A stretch of 64,000 nucleotides of DNA from Eutreptiella sp. 'Long Island Sound 2002' (GCA_964036045.1 OZ038378.1:125860001-125924000); one strand, 5' to 3'; positions 15,561 through 58,388 are shown, counted from the stretch's first letter. A program made the numbers and translations. The notes: generated by a model not told the origin, from the letters alone.

Positions 15561-16359
15561 GCAAGATATATTGTTTGATTAGTTTGGGCATGGCGTCGCA
15601 TCCCGGATTTTTGGAGGGCTTGCACTAGCTCCGGGTTGGGTTCTGTTTCTGCTAGTTGCAGTTGGACGGGGCCCCTCCGCTAGTTGTTGGGCAAAGAAAA
15701 AAAACACCCGGTCTCTGCATAACGCACAGTACCGCATGGTACTTACTCATTTCGTGCCGTTGTCCCTCAATTCTTGTGCTATTTTCTTCTTTGTTATGTT
15801 GAAGTCTAGGGGCCATGGGCAAGTGGCCTATTCCTTGGTTTCTTGTTGCGCCTCCCAAGGACGGAGGCCACTCTACCTAATGCCTTCAGTAGTGCAACGG
15901 GACTGTGGATAGGGTTGTTTGTGAGGGTTGGTTGCGCATATATGCGTGTGGCTTCTTGTGTGGTGGCGTTTTCTTGGCTTACATCCTAGCGTCTCGTGCA
16001 GTGTGTAGCGGTTATGAAGGCCTTGCAATCAAAAACATGCACGTCGATGGTCACGATAACAAGCCAGTGGTCCGACGTCGGCATGAAAATAGCAATCAAA
16101 ATCAATGTAAATATCAATGATAATCAATGAAAATATGAATGAAAAACAATGAAAATATCAATGAACATTGGGACTCCATGGTACAGCATTGGTGACGGGC
16201 CACAAAGGGTGTAGGCCACAAGGGGGTTGCTACGTCACATGTTGCTCCATCGCTTTGCTTCTTATGTCCAAATCGCCGGGGATTTTAAATGGAAAATGCC
16301 TAGGAACGTGCTCGGATACACCTAAGGCTATACCGAATATGCTTGGGGATCGCCTAAGC

Positions 16360-16490
16360 GACCACCAGAAAAATCCCAAGCAATTTCCCGAGCGCCCACC
16401 GGATAAATCCCAAGCGATATCCCGAGTGGGCCCCGGATAAATCCCAAGCGATATCCCGAGCGCCCACCGGATAAATCCCGAGCGTTTTTC
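16360..16490 (+). repeat. 34-bp subterminal tandem repeat (~4 units)
   Basis: ggataaatcc recurs at 16401, 16435 and 16469; unit cgcccaccggataaatcccaagcgatatcccgag. Confidence 0.85.
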
Positions 16491-16569
16491 CAAGTGGCCA
16501 GCGGAGAAATCCCCGGTGACGGTTGGTGCACCCACGGAAAAAATCGCTGGTGGCGCGTACTAGCAGGGG

Positions 16570-17130
16570 AAAAAAAAAAGAAAAATTGTACAAAGTACCA
16601 CAAAAAACTTGTGTCGGGCACCTCCGAACAGTTGGGTATGCGGCCCAGGTGTTGCAGTCCGACATTCGCACCGCCCCACCCCAAAACAGGGTGGGTGACA
16701 TCGGTTTGGGTATACCCCGGCCGCACTGAGGACCTCAGGGAGTGGGTTCCTGAGGTAGAGGTCAGCAAAGGTTAACGGTCAACCCCACTTTCCACTATTG
16801 TATTTGAGGGCTTTTGGTCATAGGAAATCCGTACTTTCAATCGCAAATTCACACTAATGCAACATCCCTTTCGTTTGCAAGGTCCCAAATTCGCAAATGT
16901 GAGCATTGCAATAATAATGACTGCAAAATTGTACAAAGTACCACAAGAAACATGTGTGGGGCACCTCCCAACAGTTGGGTATGCGGCCCAGGTGCTGCAG
17001 TCCGACATTCGCACCGCCCCACCCGAACACACGGTGGGTGACATGGGTTGGGGTATACCCCGGCCGCACCGGGGACCTCGGGGAGTGGGTTCCTGAGGTA
17101 GAGGTCAGCAAAGGTTAATGGTCAACGCAG
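16570..17130 (+). repeat. Direct duplication of ~200 bp (16575-16780 and 16925-17125) separated by one monomer of the 94-bp satellite
   Basis: Both copies start aaaattgtacaaagtaccaca and end gaggtagaggtcagcaaaggttaa. The spacer 16790-16890 matches the 94-bp unit. Confidence 0.85.
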
Positions 17131-17640
17131 TCTGTTGGGTAATGGTCACCTTCGCGGAGCAAGGTGGTACGGGGGGCACTTGAGGATGCCTCATCCTCAT
17201 CAATGCACTCCACCTTCACAGCTGGCTTGCTTGGGACGCCACGGCGGCGAAACGTTTTTGGAGGTGGTGCCTCCGGGACAAGGGACTCACTGCTGCTGCT
17301 GCTGCTGGTGGTACTGGGGGTGCCACTACTTGTAGAATCACCGCTGTCCGTATCTGAAGATGCGTCACTGGATGCCGTAGAGGAATTACCAGAGCTGTCT
17401 GAAGCTGTTGGGTCAGGGTCCGACGAATTATTTGCATCCACAACAATGCGCCTGTGCAGCTTGACAACACGCATTGGTTAGGTCCGCTGTGTGGCCGAGT
17501 CCGACAGAGGACCAATACAAACGATGCGGCTGAGTCCTCCGCACTGTTTGTCACCATTGTCACCTTCGTCCCCTGTTCGCGGGTTGTACTATGCTTACCT
17601 ACCACTGCCTTACCTTTTGCCCGTTCCTTGGCCAATTGTT
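16925..17640 (-). pseudogene. Degenerate accessory ORF: Ser-rich region plus conserved EGDHYP..PLLTST..LG.IP.C.EVP domain, unknown function
   Basis: ORF pieces 17115-17474 and 16854-17111 are homologous to ORF 57339-57803 (EGDHYP, PLLTSTPG, VRPG.T, LG.IP.C.EVP). Confidence 0.55.
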
Positions 17641-17809
17641 TCCGCTATTTTTTGGTTAGATAAGGGTTCGCACTGGCATAGTTGAATGTTGGCCACTGCC
17701 GTACCGCTGCCATCGTTGCAAGCGTCCAGTGCCGTTGTCCACTCCGCTCAGCACCACAACGGCCACAGATGCAGTACACATCCATTTTCCGGCTGGCAGG
17801 TGTCAATGG

Positions 17810-19400
17810 TTATATATACCGACCGGGTGCTAACATGCATGTAGCACCTGAACGTATTGTTGTCCAAAATTTTTGCGAGCAATCGCTCGAACACTGCCCT
17901 CCACATGGGGGAGGCACTGACCACACACTGCTCCAAAACCACCCCCCGCCTCTCGGGGTGCCACAGATGGACCTTAGAGCGACGGGCACGGCCAGGAATT
18001 TGACATACATTTCGTGACCCAACGTCTCTTCAATACTTTTGTCTGCCACGGTGGAGGTGAGGTGGGCAAAGCGCTTGCCAAGCCTCAAATCCCTCTCTCG
18101 TGCCTCATCTATACAGCCCATCGGTAACCGAGGCAGCTGGAAAACATGTTCCATACCATGACAATACAAGGTCTCTGTGCTACCTTCCTCACTGTATTCC
18201 AGGATAAGGTGCATCAGAAACACATGAAGCAGGCCCCAGATGTGCCATTCACTGGTGGGTATTTGTAGGGTACCACTATAGATCAGAACAACGATGTGAC
18301 AGATCGAGAGGAACAACACATGGTAAGGCAACGGAAGAGCAACATCTTGTGCAAGCCGTGACGCAAGCGACCGGGCCTCCCGACCCGTTAGCGAAACACC
18401 GGTCCGGAAGCGGCGTGGCACTAACAAGCGATGCTGACGGGAGTCAACAGGCACTTTCGTGATACCGTAGCCTATTGCCACGGTAACCAGATACTGGAAC
18501 AGTACGTTTGAATCTGCGGGGGGTTATACGTGCATGCACGACTAATGGCCCCTTTGATATTATGCAACACAGGATGCATTGGAAAAACATTTTGCAGGCC
18601 AGTGGTGCCCGCAAATTTTGTGCAGGGGCGTTCATGAAAGAAAAACGGTTCATGTAGGAACATGTCCCGAACACCGTGTGCTCTTTCCCAAGGGCACACA
18701 ACACAGGCACGCCCCCCCGGCTCCCACCATAGCTGATGGTGGTCAACAATTACAAACTGAAAAGCAACCGTGACTTGCACACGGTGGACACACCGGGCAA
18801 AACGCATAGGGACAACAAAAGGCTGGGCAGCTAGAGCATTCAACTCCCTACGTCTATGCTCCGCCACCCAACCGGTATAATCAACCTTGGACATTTCTCA
18901 CCAGGTCAAAAAACCGGTTGTTTCGGGAATGGTTTCAACAAAAGGGAACAGTGTCCCTCCCAGGTCTACCAAGGCAGCTTTGATGTTGACATTTGGACGG
19001 CCCCTTAGGGTAATTCCGCCACAAAAAATTGCAAGGGACAGAGTGCACTGGCCTGGTGGTGTAGAGGAGCGGCCCCTGCCTATTAGAGGCCCCGATTCTT
19101 TGAGAAGGTGTGCGACCACAGCCACCAGAAGCTTGTGATTCTCGGTGTCATAATTAAACTGTGGCAATATTATATTCTCCAACCCCCTCAACCGTTCAAT
19201 TGACCAGTGAGGCTGTACCTAGTTTAGAGTCTTCAGTACCCTCTTTGAGGCCAAAGCTTCATGCCGCAGACGAAGCAAATCGCTGGGCGATGGCTGAGGC
19301 GGTTTGGACGTTGAAGGGTTGCGGTGGATTTCTTGGCCACAGAGTCAACACTTGTATAGTGTGACACCCTCCGTCTTTGGAAGCCTTCTCTGTTTGATGT
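17810..19400 (-). pseudogene. Degenerate DDE transposase, Transib/RAG1/Chapaev-like motif spacing (lineage B)
   Basis: Across frameshifted ORFs: LSLAIFCGG (first-D site, D apparently mutated), FVIVDHHQLWW..G..RACVVC (second D plus CxxC), FPMHPVLH..MAIG (LH motif), LLHVFLMHL..GS...HGMEH (H..E region). Confidence 0.55.
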
Positions 19401-19580
19401 CGTTTAATGACATTGCTTTGGCTGCCGGGAACTCCCTTGTGTAGGCCTCGTCCCAGCCTTGTGCTTGTTCTGGTATAGCGTAAATGAAGGCGTGTCCTCG
19501 GTCAAGGGAAGGAGGTCCACGAACGGAGTGCAGCCACCCGTTCACCACAAATTGGTGGAAGATAGTATGCACGAAGTCGC

Positions 19581-19720
19581 CCCCCCCTACCCCCCCCCCT
19601 ACCTACCCCCCCCTACCCCCCCCAACCCCCCCCTACCCCCCCCAAACCCCCCCCTACCCCCCCCTACCCCCCCCCCCTACCTCCCCCCCCTACCCCCCCC
19701 CCCCTACCTCCCCCCCCTAC
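19581..19720 (+). repeat. C-rich (C5-9 TA/AA)n tract, G-quadruplex-prone on the minus strand
   Basis: Runs such as ccccccctacccccccctacctaccccc. Confidence 0.85.
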
Positions 19721-19799
19721 CTTCGGCTCGCTTCACTCGACAGACGGCTCGCTTCGCTCGACGCGGGGGCCAGCCCCCGCACCCCCCTTAAATGACATG

Positions 19800-20350
19800 A
19801 CTCCTGCGGTGCCCACAGACCGCCTTGTGTGTGCACCGCCTTTTGTGTGTACCGCCTTGCCTGTGGCCCCTTAAATAACAAGACTCCTGCTGTGGCCACA
19901 GGCCGCCTTTTGTGTGTTCCGCCTTGTGTGTGCACCGCCTTCTGTGTGTACCGCCTTGCCTGTGGCCCCTTAAATAACAAGACTCCTGCGGTGGCTACAG
20001 ACCGCCTTTTGTGTGTTCCGCCTTGTGTGTGCACCGCCTTCTGTGTGTACCGCCTTTCCTGTGGCCCCTTAAATAACAAGACTCCTGCGGTGGCTACAGA
20101 CCGCCTTTTGTGTGTTCCGCCTTTTGTGTGTTCCGCCTTGTGTGTGCACCGCCTTCTGTGTGTACCGCCTTGCCTGTGGCCCCTCAAATAACAAGACTCC
20201 TGCAGTGGCTACAGACCGCCTTTTGTGTGTTCCGCCTTGTGTGTGCACCGCCTTCTGTGTGCACCGCCTGGCCTGTGGCCCCTTAAATAACCAGACTCCT
20301 GCGGTGGCCACAGGCCGCCGTTTGTGTGTTCCGCCTTGTGTGTGCACCGC
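19800..20350 (+). repeat. 99-bp minisatellite (~5.5 units) built from 15-17-bp ccgccttttgtgtgt subrepeats
   Basis: ctgtggcccc recurs at 19861, 19960, 20059, 20174 and 20273 (period 99; one unit carries an extra subrepeat). Confidence 0.9.
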
Positions 20351-20352
20351 CT

Positions 20353-20480
20353 TCCCCCCCCATACCCCCCCCTACCTTCTCGACCCCCCCCCTACCTCCC
20401 CCCCCTACCCCCCCCCTACCTCCCCCCCCTACCTCCCCCCCCTACCCCCCCCCAACCCCCCCCCAACCCCCCCCCCTACC
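20353..20480 (+). repeat. Second C-rich tract
   Basis: Same ccccccctac-type runs as 19581-19720. Confidence 0.85.
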
Positions 20481-20557
20481 TCCAAGGTAGGGGGGGGCGA
20501 CATCGTGCGATATATGGGTGGAAGGACATTGGAGGCCTAATAAACGGAAAAGGGCAT

Positions 20558-23165
20558 GAGGGCTTTTGGTCAAGAAAAAACCGTACTTTCAATCGCAAAT
20601 TCACACCAATGCAACATTCCATGTCTCTCGGGCCATTCCAGTATGGTATTTGAGTGCTTCTGGTGAAGGGAGAACCGTACTTTCAATCGCAAATTCACAC
20701 TAATGCAACATTCCATGTCTCTCGGGCCATTCCAATATGGTATTTGAGTGCTTCTGGTCAAGAAAAAACCGTACTTTCAATCGCAAATCCACACCAATGC
20801 AACATCCCATCTCTCTCGGGCCATTCCAATATGGTATTTGAGTGCTTTTGGTCACGAGAAAACCGTACTTTCAATCGCGAGTTTCCTACCAATGCAACAT
20901 TCCACGTCTCTCGGGCCATTCCACTATGGTATATGAGTCCTTCTGGTGAAGACAAAAACCGAACTTTCAATCGCAAATTCACACCAATGCAACATCCCAT
21001 GTCTCTCGGGCCATTCCAATATGGTATTTGAGTGCTTCTGGTGAAGGGAGAACCGTACTTTCAATCGCAAATTCACACCAATGCAACATTCCATGCCTCT
21101 CGGGCCATTCCAATATGGTATTTGAGTGCTTCTGGTCAAGAAAAAACCGTACTTTCAATCGCAAATCCACACCAATGCAACATCCCATCTCTCTCGGGCC
21201 ATTCCAATATGGTATTTGAGTGCTTTTGGTCACGAGAAAACCGTACTTTCAATCGCGAGTTTCCTACCAATGCAACATTCCACGTCTCTCGGGCCATTCC
21301 ACTATGGTATATGAGTCCTTCTGGTGAAGACAAAAACCGAACTTTCAATCGCAAATTCACACCAATGCAACATCCCATGTCTCTCGGGCCATTCCAATAT
21401 GGTATTTGAGTGCTTCTGGTGAAGAGAAAACCGTACTTTCAATCGCAAATGCACACCAATGCAACTTCCCATCTCTCTCGGGCCATTCCAGTATGGTATT
21501 TGAGTGCTTCTGGTGAAGGGAGAACCGTACTTTCAATCGCAAATTCACACCAATGCAACATTCCATGTCTCTCGGGCCATTCCAATATGGTATTTGAGTG
21601 CTTCTGGTCAAGAAAACACCGTACTTTCAATCGCAAATTCACACCAATGCAACATCCCATCTCTCTCGGGCCATTCCATTATGGTATTTGAGTGCTTCTG
21701 GTCACGAGAAAACCGTACTTTCAATCGCAAGTTTCCTACCAATGCAACGTTCCATGTCTCTTGCGCCATTCCACTATGTATTTGAGTCCTTCTGGTCAAG
21801 AGAAAACCGTACTTTCAATCGCAAATTCACACCAATGCAACATCCCATGTCTCTCGGGCCATTCCACTATGGTATTTGAGTGCTTCCGGTGAAAAGAAAA
21901 CCGTACGTTCAATCGCAAATTCACACCAATGCAACATGCCATATCTCTCGGGCCATTCCAATATGGTATTTGAGTGCTCCTGGTCAAGAAAACACCGTCC
22001 TTTCAATCGCAAATTCACATCAATGCAACATCCCATGTCTCTTGGGCCATTCCCGTATGGTATTTGAGTGCTTCTGGTGAAGAGAAAACCGTACTTTCAA
22101 TCGCAAATTCACATCAGTGCAACATCCCATGTCTCTCGGGCCATTCCACTATGGTATTTGAGTGCTTCTGGTGAAGAGAAAACCGTACTTTCAATCGCAA
22201 ATTCACACCAATGCAACATCCCATGTCTCGCGGGCCATTCCAGTGTGGTATTGGAGGGCTTTTGGTCAACAGAAAACCGTACTTTCAATCGCAAATTCCT
22301 ACCAATGCAACATTCCATGTCTCTCGGGTCATTCCAGTATGGTATTTGAGTCCTTCTGGTGAAGAGAAAATCGTACTTTCAATCGCAAATTCACATCGAT
22401 GCAACATCCCATGTCTATTGGGCCATTCCAATATGGTTTTTGAGAGCTTTTGGTCAAGAAAAAACCGTACTTACTATCGCAAGTTCACACCAATGCAACA
22501 TCCCATGTCTCTCGGGCCATTCTAGTGTCGTATTTTGAGGGCTTTTGGTCAAGGGAAAACCGTACTTTCAATCGCAAATTCACACCAATGCAACATTCCA
22601 TGTCTCTCGGGCCATTCCAATATGGTACTTGAGTGCTTCTGCGGAAGAGAAAACCGTACTTTCAATCGCAAATTCACACCAATGCAACATCCCATGTCTC
22701 TCGGGCCATTCCAGTATAGTTTGTGAGAGCTTTTGGTCAAGAAAAAACCGTACTTTCAATCGCAAATTCACACCAATGCAACATCCCATGGCTCTCGGGC
22801 CATTCCAATATGGTTTTTGAGAGCTTTTGGTCAAGAAAAAACCGTACTTTCAATCGCAAATTCCTACCAATGCAACATCCCATGGCTCTTGGGCCGTTCC
22901 AGTATGGTATTTGAGAGCTTCTGGTCAAGAGAAAACCGTACTTTCAATCGCAAATGCACACCAATGCAACATCCCATGTCTGTTGGGCCATTCCAATATG
23001 GTTTTGAGAGCTCTTGGTCAAGGGAAAACCGTACTTTCAATCGCAAATTCACACTAGTGCAACATCCCATGTTTGTTGGGCCATTCCAATATGGTGTTTG
23101 AGAGCTTTTGGCCAAGTGAAAACAGTACTCTCAATCGCACAATCACAGTAATGCAACATCCCTTT
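20558..23165 (+). repeat. 94-bp tandem satellite (~27-28 units) with a 378-bp 4-mer higher-order repeat in its left part
   Basis: Unit gagtgcttctggt..agaaaaccgtactttcaatcgcaaattcacaccaatgcaacatcccatgtctctcgggccattccaatatggtattt; unit starts at 20558, 20652, 20746. Near-identical ORF translations start at 20654 and 21032, 378 bp apart. Confidence 0.95.
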
Positions 23166-23236
23166 CGTTCGCAAACTCGCAATGTCGCACATCTCGGCTA
23201 TACCAATACGAAAAGTAGCCAGTAGCTCATTCGTCG

Positions 23237-23734
23237 TTAGTTAAAATCCCATTCAATCAGCACCTCTCGCTGCTGGGACATCCAGTGACGGGGACGCGTG
23301 ACACGACCCGTCAGGTAATCCAGCGCAGTGCGGCCGTGCACAACGCGGAGAAGGCCGCCACTTCCACACCAGATGGCACTCCGGCCCAAAAGGCGCGGGT
23401 TGTCAAACTGGCGACACTGAAAACATGCGGCCAGTTGGATGGCCGCGGGCGTGAGGGGTACGTACCCTGGCCCCTGCTGCAAACCCTGCCGCAAACTGTC
23501 CATGGCGAGGCCAAGTTCAGACTTCTTCCCTCGCCGCCAAGTTGGCTGCCCCGGCGCCCCGCCTTCCCGCCGCCCTGGCGTCTGCATTTCTTGCATCCAT
23601 TGATGCACCTCCTCACCCAGGCGACGGCATTGTTTCCCCGTTAGCCGCAAAGACGAGGCCGGGGGGGAGGCCGAGGTGTGCGAGAAAACCTGCATGGCCT
23701 GGAGTGCCTGGTACGCGCACCCCTGGGCCAGCAC
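23237..23734 (-). other. GC-rich ORF-like segment (165 aa), unknown, possibly degenerate cargo
   Basis: Open frame in the ORF track with coding-like GC-rich composition; no recognisable motif. Confidence 0.25.
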
Positions 23735-24081
23735 ATCACGAGCCTTGCATACGACACGTGTACAGGGAAAACCACGCTGCTGCAGGGCGGCCTACAGGCT
23801 ACTACTCTGTGGCGAATTCGCTGGGTCAACAATAGTGCCCGTATACTTTATAACATCCCGCGTGGGGGGGGGGGGGCACGCGGTCACCCCCCCTCCACCT
23901 TGGCCTTTTTGGCGGGTGGTTCAGACACACAAGGAACAGCGGAACCTGAATCAAACAGAGAATCACCGGCCTTACGTTTACCAGCCTTACGCAAGGGCGG
24001 TGCATCAGGGCCCAGGACTTGAATGGCATAGCAGTGAGCAGATGTGGGGGCTGAACTAATGACCTCCGGGATCCCCGTGCT

Positions 24082-24807
24082 CTACACACTCAGATCAAGA
24101 GGACGAAAATCTTCTTGCGGGGATACCACCTTGCGTGCTACCCCCTTGCCCCGGAGGCAATAGTAGTTCCTGGCGGCCTTGTTGAACTTCTCGGCCCCCG
24201 GCGCATAGTCCTTGAAAAGCCGCTCCCGCTCCTTCCGCAACGCAGCACCCGCCTTCTTCAGCGCCCCCGGTCCGGCCTTCCGCTGGTCGTGGACGGTCTT
24301 CTTCGCCTTTGCCACCGGGGCCCCCAAGGTTTGCTTGAGCTTGGTGAGACCATCACAGGCCTTTCCAAGGTCTTCCCTGGTCAGGCCCATGAGGTCTGCC
24401 TGCAGCCGCTCGTAGAAGTCCCTCTGCATGCCATGGTCCTTTTGGCACCGCGCCGACAAGTGCGGTGTTCCTTCCTACAGGGCCCAGGATCTCCAGTACA
24501 TCAGCAGCGGTCCGCGGGGTCGTTCGATGAGGTAAAAGCTGTTGGTGCTGCCCTCCACCCCAAACCAATTACCCACGTAATAGGCCCACCTGGCAGGGAG
24601 GTCCTCCCGACAGCCGTCCCTCTCGGCCATGGCGTTGTTGGCGAAGGCGAATACGGAGCTGGACATGAAACGAAGAGCAGAAGCTATGGTAGCAGAAGCA
24701 GCGTAGGGCTTGGGGCAAAGGAAGTGGAGGTAGAAACCCAGTACGCCACCTACTTCGTCCCCTGCGCGTCCCCACTCGGTTGAGGCGGCTGCCAGGCAGC
24801 TTGCCAA
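24082..24807 (-). pseudogene. Unknown ~240-codon ORF interrupted by a single in-frame TAG (24475-24477)
   Basis: ORFs 24475-24807 and 24082-24459 share one frame (...YWRSWAL*EGTPHLSARCQKDH...). Strongly coding-like GC-rich sequence with a helical, K/A/R-rich C-terminal half. Confidence 0.5.
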
Positions 24808-25763
24808 AGTTGCAGTACAGACCGCTGTTTTTTCCGTGGTGGCTCAGGTACTGCCGGCGGTTTGGCGAGGAGGCGGAACTCAATGGCCCAAAGGAAACCA
24901 GACTCATGGACTTGGGAGTGGTAGTTGAGGTCAAAAAAGTGACCCTTAGGGGGTGTGACAAACAGGGTGTATGTCCCACACTCTACCTCATCCCAACACT
25001 TGCCTGCACTTTGATCATGGTCCGGCATGTGCAACACCGTAATCCGCGCGCGTGAAACCGCCACAAAACGGGGCTGAGGGTCTTGCGCAAAGACGTTGTT
25101 AATAATCGCGCACAAGGACTCATGGGGTTTGTGGATGAAAGGCAGTGGCGGAAACAGTGGGACTTTTTTTTGCAACGCTGGCTTTTTCACCGCAAAATCG
25201 GATTCCTCCAACCAGCCCTTTAGCATGTTAGGTGTCCAATTAAGGGTTTCCAATGCAGGACTCGCACTCTCTTTCAGGAACAGCCACGCGTCGTACCCCT
25301 CAATATCCTCTGGGGATGGGTCCAAACGGTCAGCGGGCGGTGTACGCAGGCGCTCGGGGAAGGGGATAATTTCCAGATGCCGATATGCAGTGCCAAGCGA
25401 AGTTTCCTGCTTGGAGGGGGCCAAATCGGAGAACGCCATACGCGCGGTTTTGAGTTCCAGTTTACATCTTTTGGCCAGCACAGAATGAAACACCGTATTT
25501 TTGGATTTCGGTTGATTGTCCGCAGGGAAAACGCGTTGCATCCAGACCCGGAACTGATTGGGTTGCACGTACGCGCGCTCCTTGTGTTCCACACAATAGG
25601 TGGCTAGGATGGTTTGTAATTGCGTCTGCACGTGCATTTTTCCTAGTTTTTCCGGTTGTACCACATCGGCATCCACCTCGGAAATTGCCAACGGTTCAGC
25701 TGGAACAGTGGCTGGCACAAGAGAAGACGAGTCAGACATTATGCAAGTCGGCATGCTACACAA
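24750..25763 (-). CDS. Uninterrupted 337-aa ORF, hypothetical protein (first ATG probably 25739)
   Basis: One of the longest ORFs in the window and not low-complexity. Its composition is globular-protein-like and it has no stops, unlike neighbouring relics. Confidence 0.55.
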   Translation of the reverse strand: MCSMPTCIMSDSSSLVPATVPAEPLAISEVDADVVQPEKLGKMHVQTQLQTILATYCVEHKERAYVQPNQFRVWMQRVFPADNQPKSKNTVFHSVLAKRCKLELKTARMAFSDLAPSKQETSLGTAYRHLEIIPFPERLRTPPADRLDPSPEDIEGYDAWLFLKESASPALETLNWTPNMLKGWLEESDFAVKKPALQKKVPLFPPLPFIHKPHESLCAIINNVFAQDPQPRFVAVSRARITVLHMPDHDQSAGKCWDEVECGTYTLFVTPPKGHFFDLNYHSQVHESGFLWAIEFRLLAKPPAVPEPPRKKQRSVLQLWQAAWQPPQPSGDAQGTK

Positions 25764-27464
25764 GAGGAAGGGCGCACATGCTGCGAGGATGGGGTAACCT
25801 TTAGCTACTCGGTGCTGCAGCAGGCGCCAGCACCACCCGTGTCAGTGGCCTGGGGCGCTTCGTGCGACTATGGGAGGGCCCGTTTGCTTGTGGTCCGCAA
25901 GGGGATTGATACTCGCCAGGTTCACAAGGCCCGGGTCCCATATACTCGAACCTGAAGGTTTGTGATTTGTTGCTTGCGCTACCATCGGGGCCCGCATCAG
26001 ACATGGTGCAACTGCAAACGACAAACCTACGGGCGCCGGACGTACGTGCGTTGCACTGCTCCGCGGTCTCCTTGCTGCGGGGTTGACGGGGGGGGGGGGG
26101 GGATCCCCGGCGCGGGTATGGGCGCCGCCGATTGGAAAAATCGGGGAGCGGGGAGCGTGGCTGGGGGCGTGGGTGGGCGCAGCTCCCCCCTCTACATCTA
26201 CGTGAGGGTGAGGCTCCCTTCACACGTGCGCTTGGGAGAACACGGCACGTCGAGTGGGGGGTGGGGGTGGAGGGGGAGGGGGAGGGGGGGCTGTCGTAGG
26301 CCGCATAGGAAGCAGGGAGACCCGTCGGTGCTGAACCATATCCGGCAACGTTGGCTGACCATGGGGAGGTGCAAGGTGGCATGTGGCAGGCTGCACAGGC
26401 AGCAAAGACGTCCGGGGCTTTGGGGCTTTGGGTCGCCCGAGCCATGAGCCTCGCGCGCTCCAGCAAGGGGTTGAGAAAGTGCGAACGGCTAAGGCGCTGG
26501 CCGCGCTGCCACATCTGCACCTGGCCCTGACGGCGCAGGGCAAACACGTAGCGTGACCATCCCATGTCGAACCGACTGTCCAGCTCCGGCAGGGGTAGCC
26601 GCAGCAGCTCTTCAGTCCGGGGGGTAAGGGGGTCAGTACGCGAGGCTAGGGGCGGGGTGGGGACATGTGCAGGGGCGAATTTCGGGGGGGGGGGGGGGCT
26701 GGGTAGTTGGGAAGGTGGTATTGGAGGGCAAACCGCATGGGGCACAAGGGGTATGGGTGACGGAGTGCGGTGTGATGGGGGTGATGGGGGGCTTGGCAGG
26801 GATGTCAGAGGCTGAGGCTGAGTTGGGGTGCTGGGGGTGATGGTGGCGACAAGCAATAGAGCAATTGTTGCTGAAACATCCATTCCATGGCTGTGAGGAC
26901 AAGACAACGTTGGGGCATAGCAGGCACAAATCCAAAACCAATGCAATAGCAAAACATCCAGTTCCTCACCCTTCTTATTTCCCCACACCCAACGCTATAG
27001 ACCTTGAAAAATCAGTCAAGTATTTGATTCAACACAAAGACCCAAATCACCTCCAACACACAGCACAAACAAATTTGCGTCATGGGCATGCACAGGTACC
27101 ATCCACAACAATCCTTGTTTGACTCTACCAGGGGGTGGCCCCTGCTGGTCCATGATCCCCCATCTCTCCAGTGCCGTACAAATAGGCACCTTCATCGGAC
27201 GCGGCCAGCACTTAAGGGGCTCTCCAGTCAAAAAAAAATCTCTGAAGAACACCAATGGTGATGCACAGTGCACATTGGGCAAGGCATGTGGAGGGAGGAG
27301 GGATGTTAAGGGTTATGACGCAAAAGATCTATCAAACAAAGGAATGATGGTGGGTTGGGCAGATTGGGAAATGCATCTGGTGGGGTGTTCAATGGGTTGG
27401 GTCTGGCCTGACTTTTCTGAAAACGCCTACCGATTGGGTAAGGCATGTTGGCAAAAATCCCTGA

Positions 27465-27645
27465 GGAGGATCCCGAGCGGCCCCCGGATAAATCCCAAGC
27501 AATGTCCCGAGCGCCCACCAGAAAAATCCCAAGCGATTTCCCAAGCGGCCACCCGATGAATCCCAGGCGATATCCCGAGCGGCCACCCGATAAATCCCAG
27601 GCGATATCCCGAGCGCCCACCGCATCCATCCTGAGCGTTTTTCCG
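27465..27645 (+). repeat. 34-bp subterminal tandem repeat (~5 units), same family as 16360-16490
   Basis: Units of the form ccggataaatcccaagc.at.tcccgagcg.cc. Confidence 0.85.
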
Positions 27646-28530
27646 AGCAGCCACAGAATTTGTGCCAAGCGGTTTTTTTCGGGTCAGGATTTATCCTAGG
27701 CATTTTGGCAGCGATGGTTCCGAATCCCGACGCGTATACCCGGGTGTTTTCGCTAAATCTTGTGGGAAATGGGTAGGAATTTGGACATAAGAAGCAAAGC
27801 GATTGGCCACATGTGTTGTCTCACGCTAGTGCAGGCATCTTGTGTTGTGGGCTCCGGATTTACCTCATGGTGGGGATGGTATAGGTGGCATGTGTGTAGT
27901 TTGTGGTGCCGGAAGCGACTCGGCTGACGACTCCGTATGGTGGGGTTGCAGTCACCCATCAACACGTCATACCAACAAGAGCTTGTGTACACGTCTTGCC
28001 AGTGTGTCCCTTATTGTCAGTGCAACCCGTAGCAAGTGAGTTTCCACAACGACTTCTCGTTGGGTAGGCGTATGGTCAGAGCTAGCATTGTGCCCTGTGT
28101 GTGCCAAAAAAAGTGGGAGTCATTGCGTGGGTTCCGTTGCATAAAGGGGTCCAATCATTCATCTAACCACATTCCATCTATCCTAGTTGCGAATTCATTG
28201 ATTGATTCACGGAAACGCCGCCACCGTACTTGGCACTTGAGGCAAGGCATTGAGAGGAGCCCAAAACCCAAGAAATGAATGGGCTACCCCAACTTGAGGC
28301 AAGTATGGTTTTTTGCTCTAAGCAAACAGTATAGGCCTCTGCATCCAAAGCTGTGCGCGCCGGATCTTGCAGCTAAACACGATCCCAACCCACCTCTACC
28401 TCTTGGTTGGAGTAGGAGGCTACAACATTTTCCCCACACAGATGAGCCATCAACGCCCTCGCCCGCAAAGAAACAAGTGGTGGCACCAGGGCTTGCTATG
28501 GGAAAATACCGGGCTACACATCCGGTGTGG

Positions 28531-28560
28531 CACGTGTCGCAAACTGCTTTGCTTCATATG
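28531..28560 (+). repeat. Additional copy of the CAC-type transposon end
   Basis: CACGTGTCGCAAACTGCTTTGCTTCATATG, followed by aaatccctaccgatttc, which resembles the interior of the 27815 end. Confidence 0.7.
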
Positions 28561-57338: not shown

Positions 57339-57950
57339 TCAAAAAAACGGGGTGGGGTACCCGCACACAACCACACGGGCAAACGAGCATAGGAGTACAA
57401 ATTCACTCTTCAAAGTTTTCCAACCCATTGTTAAAAAAAAGCACTTGTCGGGCACCTCCGAACAACTGGGTATGTGGCCTAGGAGCAGCAATACGTCATT
57501 CCCACTGCTCCGGCCCGATTGGGGCTGGGCGTCATCGGTTTGGGTAATCCCTGGGCGTACCATGGATCTCGGGGGGTGGGCTCCTGGGGTTGATGTCAAC
57601 AATGGTTTCCGGTTGGCATACTCATTTGGGTAATGGTCGCCTTCCTGCAAGAAGGTCCAAGGCGGTGCTATACAATATGCTTCATCCACATGAATGAACT
57701 CCATGTTAACAGTTGCTCTGCTTGAATAGCCAAGCCGGGGAACCTTCTTTGTAGGCGGTTTAACGTACGAAGGGGAGTAACGGCCGCTGTTGCTTGTGAG
57801 CATTGCGTTACTGGTAGGAGCATCAATGCTGATAGCGGAGCTTGAAGTAGTTACATCAGAGGACGAACTAGAGGAACTGCTTAAAATCCTTTGGTCACGT
57901 CTTGCTGAACTACTTGCACCTGCAACAATGCACCTGTGTAGCGTGTCCTA
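57339..57950 (-). pseudogene. Second, diverged copy of the Ser-rich/EGDHYP accessory ORF
   Basis: LQEGDHYP..RKPLLTSTPG..VRPGIT..LLGHIPSCSEVPDKCF, homologous to 16925-17480. Confidence 0.55.
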
Positions 57951-58357: not shown

Positions 58358-58388
58358 CATATGAAGCAAAGTGATTCAGCGACATGTG
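58358..58388 (-). repeat. Fourth copy of the CAC-type transposon end
   Basis: Revcomp is CACATGTCGCTGAATCACTTTGCTTCATATG. Confidence 0.7.

Follow-up and report, generated by a model that had tools for sequence, protein, structure and literature searches.

A probable RAG1-fold DNA transposon family with single-base target-site duplications in Eutreptiella sp. 'Long Island Sound 2002'

En/Spm elements have CAC termini, subterminal arrays of short motifs, an accessory gene besides the transposase gene, and abundant internal-deletion derivatives. The CMCT clade unites EnSpm/CACTA, Mirage, Chapaev, Transib, Plavaka, ESTA, Lanisha, and RAG1, and it is characterized by 5'-CA..TG-3' termini, target-site duplications (TSDs) of 2 to 5 bp, and a D..D-CxxC..HxxxH-E residue layout (PMC12730594). 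RAG, BbeRAGL, and HzTransib produce 5-bp TSDs (bioRxiv 10.1101/2023.08.20.553239), and mouse RAG1 has the catalytic residues D600, D708, and E962, the last two of which are separated by an insertion bearing the zinc ligands C727/C730 and H937/H942 (PMC4914335). A 64,000-nucleotide stretch of Eutreptiella sp. 'Long Island Sound 2002' DNA (GCA_964036045.1 OZ038378.1:125860001-125924000, here called the window) contains a single 11.6-kb transposon copy at positions 16236-27815, bounded by CACATGT termini and carrying subterminal repeats, tandem arrays, and several open reading frames (ORFs). This copy is very probably an inactive, nearly full-length representative of a CMCT-group DNA transposon family with a RAG1-type fold, undescribed as far as could be found. 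The family inserts at C-N-[A/T]-N-G sites with duplication of exactly the central base.

The genome searched comprised 2.28 Gb; 20 and then 40 further loci were retrieved, and 55 independent insertions were scored. The same single base was present on both sides of the element in 50 of the 55 insertions (binomial P = 9e-25), and duplications of 2, 3, 4, and 5 bp were found in 6, 0, 1, and 0 insertions, respectively; all seven of the miniature copies scored obeyed the one-base rule. Furthermore, one insertion, represented by loci L001 and L016, lies within a host repeat that is itself dispersed. In five unoccupied paralogues of this site, the alignments of the left and right flanks overlapped by exactly 1 base, and all six unoccupied paralogues had ...T... 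in place of the ...T[CAC...GTA]T... of the occupied site. A TSD of 2 to 5 bp and a shifted element boundary were both ruled out by the flank counts together with these empty sites. The 50 reconstructed target sites indicated a palindrome, C-N-[W]-N-G (W being A or T), centred on the duplicated base: C occupied position -2 in 31 sites (P = 5e-7), G occupied position +2 in 28 (P = 8e-7), either or both were present in 44, and the centre was A or T in 35. The window copy fits this target exactly, with the TSD consisting of a T at 16235 and a T at 27816 in the context C(16233)-g-T / T-t-G(27818). An earlier note on this DNA, drawn up from the sequence alone, had reported no TSD, which was wrong. 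A literature search for a DNA transposon with a 1-bp TSD, incomplete in its coverage and with Repbase outside it, returned no report. As a separate observation on the target sites, the bases at -1 and +1 were identical in 19 of the 50, against about 25% expected, and complementary in just 9, an odd pattern for an otherwise palindromic target.

The ends of the window copy recur throughout the genome. Terminal motif CGCTTTGCTTCWTATG was present four times in the window, against 0.03 expected, and its genome-wide matches numbered 133 + 146 = 279, against 2 + 7 = 9 for the reversed control. In the window, end A lies on the left as a 38-bp terminal inverted repeat (TIR) at 16236..16273 on the plus strand, composed of CACATGTTGC, TCCAT, and a 23-bp block, and end B lies on the right as a 37-bp TIR at 27779..27815 on the minus strand, composed of CACATGTGGC, CAAT, and the same 23-bp block. 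The 25-bp perfect inverted repeat described in the earlier note was recovered at 16249-16273 and 27779-27803 and continues outward as far as the CACATGT termini at 16236 and 27815. Across the family, end A reads CACATGTCGC-TCCAT, then the common 23-bp block, then CGCCGGGGATTTT, and end B reads CACATGTCGC-AAAT, then the same block, then CCCTACCCATTTCCC. Approximately 120 A ends and 137 B ends were found in the genome, with 0 matches to control queries. End A was about 98% conserved per position and the ends overall about 97%, and the termini CACATGT...ACATGTG were present in 55 copies. The earlier note had proposed a genome search for co-occurring left and right ends; in every copy examined, A was paired with B.

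Family elements ranged in length from 325 bp to 12.3 kb and included numerous internal-deletion derivatives that are mobilizable in trans, the smallest being the 325-bp miniature copies. The internal order, which the note had also suggested comparing, was conserved: L014, L020, L034, and L042 were colinear with the window copy. The content of L034 and L042 was the transposase region followed by the counterparts of window positions ~23630-25845 and 26965-27815, and that of L014 corresponded to 23938-27815. The window copy is among the most complete of the family, because other copies are colinear subsets of its arrangement with differing deletion breakpoints. In addition, both flanks of the window copy were found side by side at C1:86994182-86994717, with approximately 90% identity. 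The left flank (query 75-299) matched C1:86994495-86994717, and the right flank (query 3-300) matched C1:86994182-86994479 on the same strand; the 11.6 kb has thus split a sequence that is uninterrupted at another locus. The proposal of a single large DNA transposon bounded by CAC-type ends was borne out by the A and B pairing, the 1-bp TSD, and the adjacency of the flanks in the paralogue.

The transposase gene of the window copy is a remnant at ~17115..19566 on the minus strand, which would encode ~815 amino acids (aa) when intact. It is now divided into three frames, corresponding to aa 1-301, 308-485, and 487-827 of an 854-codon open frame in copy L013, and its start codon has been replaced. 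Because the transposase lacks a start codon and contains at least two frameshifts, the window copy is unable to transpose by itself. The DDE transposase relic that had been recognized from the sequence is real, and the Ser-rich accessory ORF listed beside it (17115-17474) corresponds to the C terminus of the same protein, a conserved acidic/Ser-rich tail. A word search identified 10 transposase relatives, down to 37% identity, and an exhaustive profile search identified 413 cluster representatives, mainly fragments; none of these carried a Pfam domain, nor did the 10 word-search relatives. Several relatives came from 2.5-4.5 kb contigs resembling transcripts, and a metagenome scan for relatives returned nothing.

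Alignment of the transposases revealed conserved motifs in a fixed order, namely, YxDGYxPRG, ADHHHLWxE-x5-CVxCPW, QPVLHNxKGAISR, SLTGREA, and LYxHGxxH-x13-SDEAGE, which contain the residues D138, D230, C243-x2-C246, H429-x3-H433, and E447 in that order. In the wider family, C243 was conserved in 37 of 39 sequences, H433 in 70 of 82, and E447 in 62 of 70. The core of an AlphaFold (AF2) model had a predicted local distance difference test score (pLDDT) of 70-89, indicating moderate confidence. In a Foldseek search of the PDB, the top 47 matches were all RAG1, HzTransib, or BbRAGL, with E values of ~2e-5. An independent aligner (VIA-align), run against representative structures, placed HzTransib first (Z 8.9), followed by RAG1 (Z 8.7) and BbRAGL (Z 7.8), with 270-324 residues aligned, and matched residues 86-446 of the model to RAG1 531-959. 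The D/D/CxxC/HxxxH/E residues followed the same order as in RAG1, with similar spacing. These structural comparisons suggest that the transposase belongs with the RAG1/Transib and CACTA-type group.

Compared with the CMCT clade, the family has the D..D-CxxC..HxxxH-E residue order, CAC..GTG termini that fit 5'-CA..TG-3' in the 55 copies, a predicted RAG1-like fold, and more than one gene per element. It differs in its 1-bp TSD, outside the 2 to 5 bp range; in the absence of detectable sequence similarity to the named lineages; and in its polar ends with same-strand subterminal motif arrays. The motifs, termini, and modeled fold are thus those of the clade and the TSD is not, and placement there would rest on the fold-level match to RAG1/Transib.

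All genes of the element are on the minus strand, and end B is therefore upstream. The most strongly supported partner of the transposase, ORF337, is intact in the window (24750..25763, minus strand; 337 aa), as first described. Homology to the N-terminal extension of foreign transposase homologues spans its residues 71-215, with 36% identity (E 3e-24) to that of P0005, in which the ORF337-like domain immediately precedes the transposase core. The N terminus of P0010 likewise resembles ORF337, and P0056 is a free-standing relative with 43% identity; the AF2 model of ORF337 had a pLDDT of 33 and was unusable. Because the domain is linked to the transposase core in other organisms, ORF337 appears by homology to be a family component rather than captured cargo, and the suggestion in the earlier note that the element moves unknown genes as cargo was not supported. 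A second partner, ORF311, survives in the window as a remnant at 23893..24765 (minus strand) encoding a helical, coiled-coil-like protein with a basic C-terminal tail. It aligned in one frame, with one interruption, to the open copies in L020 and L014, in agreement with the report of a second ORF with one stop. The proline-rich ORF397 (25801..26988, minus strand; 395 aa) is possibly not a gene, because it is fully open in the window copy only and is frame-inconsistent elsewhere. Furthermore, a 184-codon open frame at 23240..23791 (minus strand), partly common to L020 and L042, is of doubtful coding status. Nine window ORFs and five partner ORFs from better copies had no match in Pfam, and ORF337 and ORF311 had no usable match in the ESM atlas. 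A MAFFT alignment suggested that ORF337 or ORF311 might be a truncated transposase paralogue, which was rejected because hhalign probabilities were <1%.

Among the alternative explanations, the capture of host genes is the least improbable, and it is nevertheless unlikely; according to this explanation, ORF311, ORF397, or both are host-derived, and the element is cargo-carrying. Consistent with capture, the word search with ORF311 returned same-species relatives only, ORF311 could not be linked to the transposase through Pfam, the atlas, or profiles, and ORF397 is open in the window alone. However, no free host copy of ORF311 was found, every match being 66-100% identical, like element copies, and the order and strand of ORF311 were the same in all copies retaining the region. 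In addition, the ratio of nonsynonymous to synonymous substitution rates (dN/dS) was 0.40-0.76 for ORF337 and ORF311, similar to that of the transposase (0.45-0.75), with shifted-frame controls that separated weakly, and ORF337 is tied to the transposase across species. ORF337 and ORF311 are probably accessory genes of the family itself.

Several findings weigh against the assignment of the window copy to a RAG1-fold family. No copy with all genes intact was present among the ~58 examined, and selection on the partner ORFs was weakly indicated by the dN/dS values. No sequence-level link of the transposase to any named family was obtained: the 854-aa frame matched no Pfam family at E <= 1, the foreign homologues P0003, P0005, and P0008 had no Pfam match, and the transposase family profile had no match among PDB sequences. 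The AF2 model had an overall pLDDT of 54 and low TM-scores (0.2-0.37), and the P element transposase followed BbRAGL in VIA-align, with a Z of 7.7. The putative equivalence of D138/D230/E447 to RAG1 D600/D708/E962 derives from order, spacing, and aligned ranges. The C1 paralogue was ~13 bp longer than a perfect empty site, and the extra sequence may represent either a footprint of excision or simply an indel. Finally, 5 of the 55 insertions (L039, L052, L053, L057, and L064) violated the one-base rule. Their flanking bases were all complementary (T/A, C/G, G/C, G/C, and C/G, respectively), and two of the five fit C-n-x/n-G without any duplication; in the exceptions, insertion may have been blunt, or one copy of the TSD may have disappeared.

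These exceptions, with their complementary flanks and the two cases resembling insertion without duplication, are compatible with the shared base being a one-base crossover or microhomology left by another integration chemistry, such as recombinase-like or blunt-end joining. A single base also falls outside the range reported for the DDE cut-and-paste superfamilies of the CMCT clade. Nevertheless, such a chemistry is decidedly improbable, since the sole conserved large protein of the family contains a RAG1-type, RNase H-like DDE core, and Pfam searches of the window and partner ORFs revealed no recombinase-like ORF. Furthermore, the target palindrome is centred on the duplicated base, as expected of a symmetric transposase dimer making staggered cuts.

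There is very little probability that the family is an ordinary member of CACTA/EnSpm, Chapaev, or Transib/RAGL, whose TSDs of 3, 4, and 5 bp, respectively, have decayed or been misread. The CAC termini, subterminal repeats, several genes, and RAG1-like fold are all compatible with ordinary membership, and they underlie the connection to Transib, RAG-like, Chapaev, and CACTA elements drawn in the earlier note. The structural grouping with RAG1/Transib agrees with that connection, and the TSDs characteristic of those families were not found: flank identity was 0, 1, and 0 of 55 for 3, 4, and 5 bp, in contrast to 50 of 55 for a single base. With ends ~97% conserved, TSDs should be legible, and exactly one base was duplicated relative to the empty paralogues. 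The resemblance to Transib, RAGL, and RAG1 comprises the best, and the only strong, structural matches of the transposase, with the RAG1-type catalytic-core fold; a CAC-initiated, heptamer-like terminus; zinc ligands placed as in RAG1 C727/C730 and H937/H942; and a palindromic target preference 5 bp wide. Unlike these systems, the family has no 5-bp TSDs and had no match to the Pfam RAG1 model or to PDB sequences. After CACATGTCGC, its ends differ in having 5 nt versus 4 nt, an asymmetry of 1 nt rather than 12/23; no nonamer-like AT-rich element was evident in end A or B; and the element carries long arrays of subterminal motifs. A RAG2-like (kelch) partner was not recognized, with Pfam blank for the partner ORFs and the ORF337 model at the low pLDDT given above. 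With En/Spm, the family shares CAC termini, subterminal arrays, an accessory gene, and internal-deletion derivatives. It differs from En/Spm in its CACAT rather than CACTA termini, in its lack of 3-bp TSDs, in having its motifs all on one strand, and in having no match to the Pfam EnSpm transposase models in the 854-aa frame, P0003, P0005, or P0008.

The least credible alternative, raised as a caveat in the earlier note, is that the two ends of the window copy belong to different insertions around a composite 11.6 kb. It draws on the many arrays in the window copy and on its length, far above the 4.5-6 kb of common copies, but it is refuted by the rule of A and B pairing, the same T at both flanks of a perfect C-N-T-N-G site, the contiguity of the flanks within ~13 bp in the paralogue, and an interior colinear with L014, L020, L034, and L042.

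The interior of this single nearly full-length copy contains several repeat arrays. The motif ATCCCRAGCG is repeated near both ends, always on one strand, and the element is therefore polar. The array at end A (16357..16513, plus strand) contains seven repeats with alternating 12/22-bp spacing (a 34-bp period), and that at end B (27470..27658, plus strand) contains 10. These are the 34-bp repeat blocks observed initially near both ends, and they are in direct, not inverted, orientation. Family copies have 7 repeats near end A and 8-10 near end B with the same 12/22-bp spacing. A direct duplication of 202 bp (16582-16783 and 16925-17126; span 16582..17126, plus strand; 93% identical) overlaps the 3' end of the transposase gene. 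Just upstream of this gene (span 19580..20480, plus strand), C-rich CCCCCCCCTA-like arrays at 19580-19722 and 20350-20480 bracket a 99-bp tandem array at 19820-20354. G-rich tracts at 26076-26122 and 26672-26719, in the region of the proline-rich ORF, mirror the C-rich CCCCCCCCTA-like arrays, and together they produce many imperfect long-range inverted repeats.

The second of the two internal tandem arrays noted at the outset consists of 27.7 units of 94 bp at 20557..23162 (plus strand). Canonical copies have ~4 units, and the array is probably an internal element component that has expanded in the window copy. A genome search with the 94-bp unit, in which 30 of 144 candidates were scored and which thus gives a lower bound, showed that among the matches listed all but one were inside or beside a family copy; the one remaining, at C2:53.93 Mb, could not be placed. 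Arrays in family copies reach ~29 units. Among the candidates scored, these results indicate expansion within elements, and the earlier suggestion that the element seeds satellites was not supported.

Several further observations concern the surroundings of the window copy and one other family member. A 22-bp tandem repeat, ATGAAAATATCAATGAAAATCA, of 3.8 units (16083-16165) adjoins the left side of the element, and arrays of this unit are present on at least eight other chromosomes. An end of a related subfamily, B-like and starting with CACGTGTCGCAAAC, lies at 28531 (plus strand), 715 bp from the main B end in a tail-to-tail arrangement. A related A-like end lies at 58388 (minus strand), and a piece of transposase C terminus with 37% identity is present at 57351-57758. 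These two ends face each other 29.9 kb apart; they were not called as one element, as their flanking bases differ (g / t) and there is no transposase core between them. At L017 (C5:86116051-86121819), the 30-bp flank of end A resembles the 30-bp flank of end B in reverse complement, as though the insertion had occurred close to the middle of a different sequence that was palindromic or bore TIRs.

For a RAG1-fold family that duplicates one base, the following mechanism can be proposed. The ~815-aa DDE transposase would bind the 37/38-bp TIRs, perhaps with help from a partner protein bound to the subterminal motifs, and would excise the element at its CAC ends, probably using the same nick-hairpin chemistry as RAG1/Transib. 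The two 3'-OH ends would then be joined to target phosphates staggered by 1 nt around the dyad of the target palindrome, and repair of the one-nucleotide gaps would yield the 1-bp duplication.

A more tentative proposal, given slightly less than even weight, is that the window copy is the founding example of an undescribed RAG1-fold lineage in which the 5-bp palindromic contact (C-N-W-N-G) has been kept, the strand-transfer sites have moved inward to a 1-nt stagger, and a polar end architecture and accessory proteins of its own are present. If this is true, the 1-bp TSD would be a target-duplication class unreported for any eukaryotic cut-and-paste superfamily. TSD length is held to be a near-fixed superfamily signature because it reflects the spacing of two active sites on bent target DNA, and a RAG1-fold enzyme with a one-base stagger and yet a 5-bp palindrome would constitute a natural experiment, indicating that target capture geometry is changeable in the fold ancestral to V(D)J recombination. 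Transposable element pipelines requiring TSDs of at least 2 bp will overlook or mis-split such elements, which nearly happened in the earlier note. The family would also provide a protist branch, with accessory genes, for a group known chiefly from animals, plants, and fungi.

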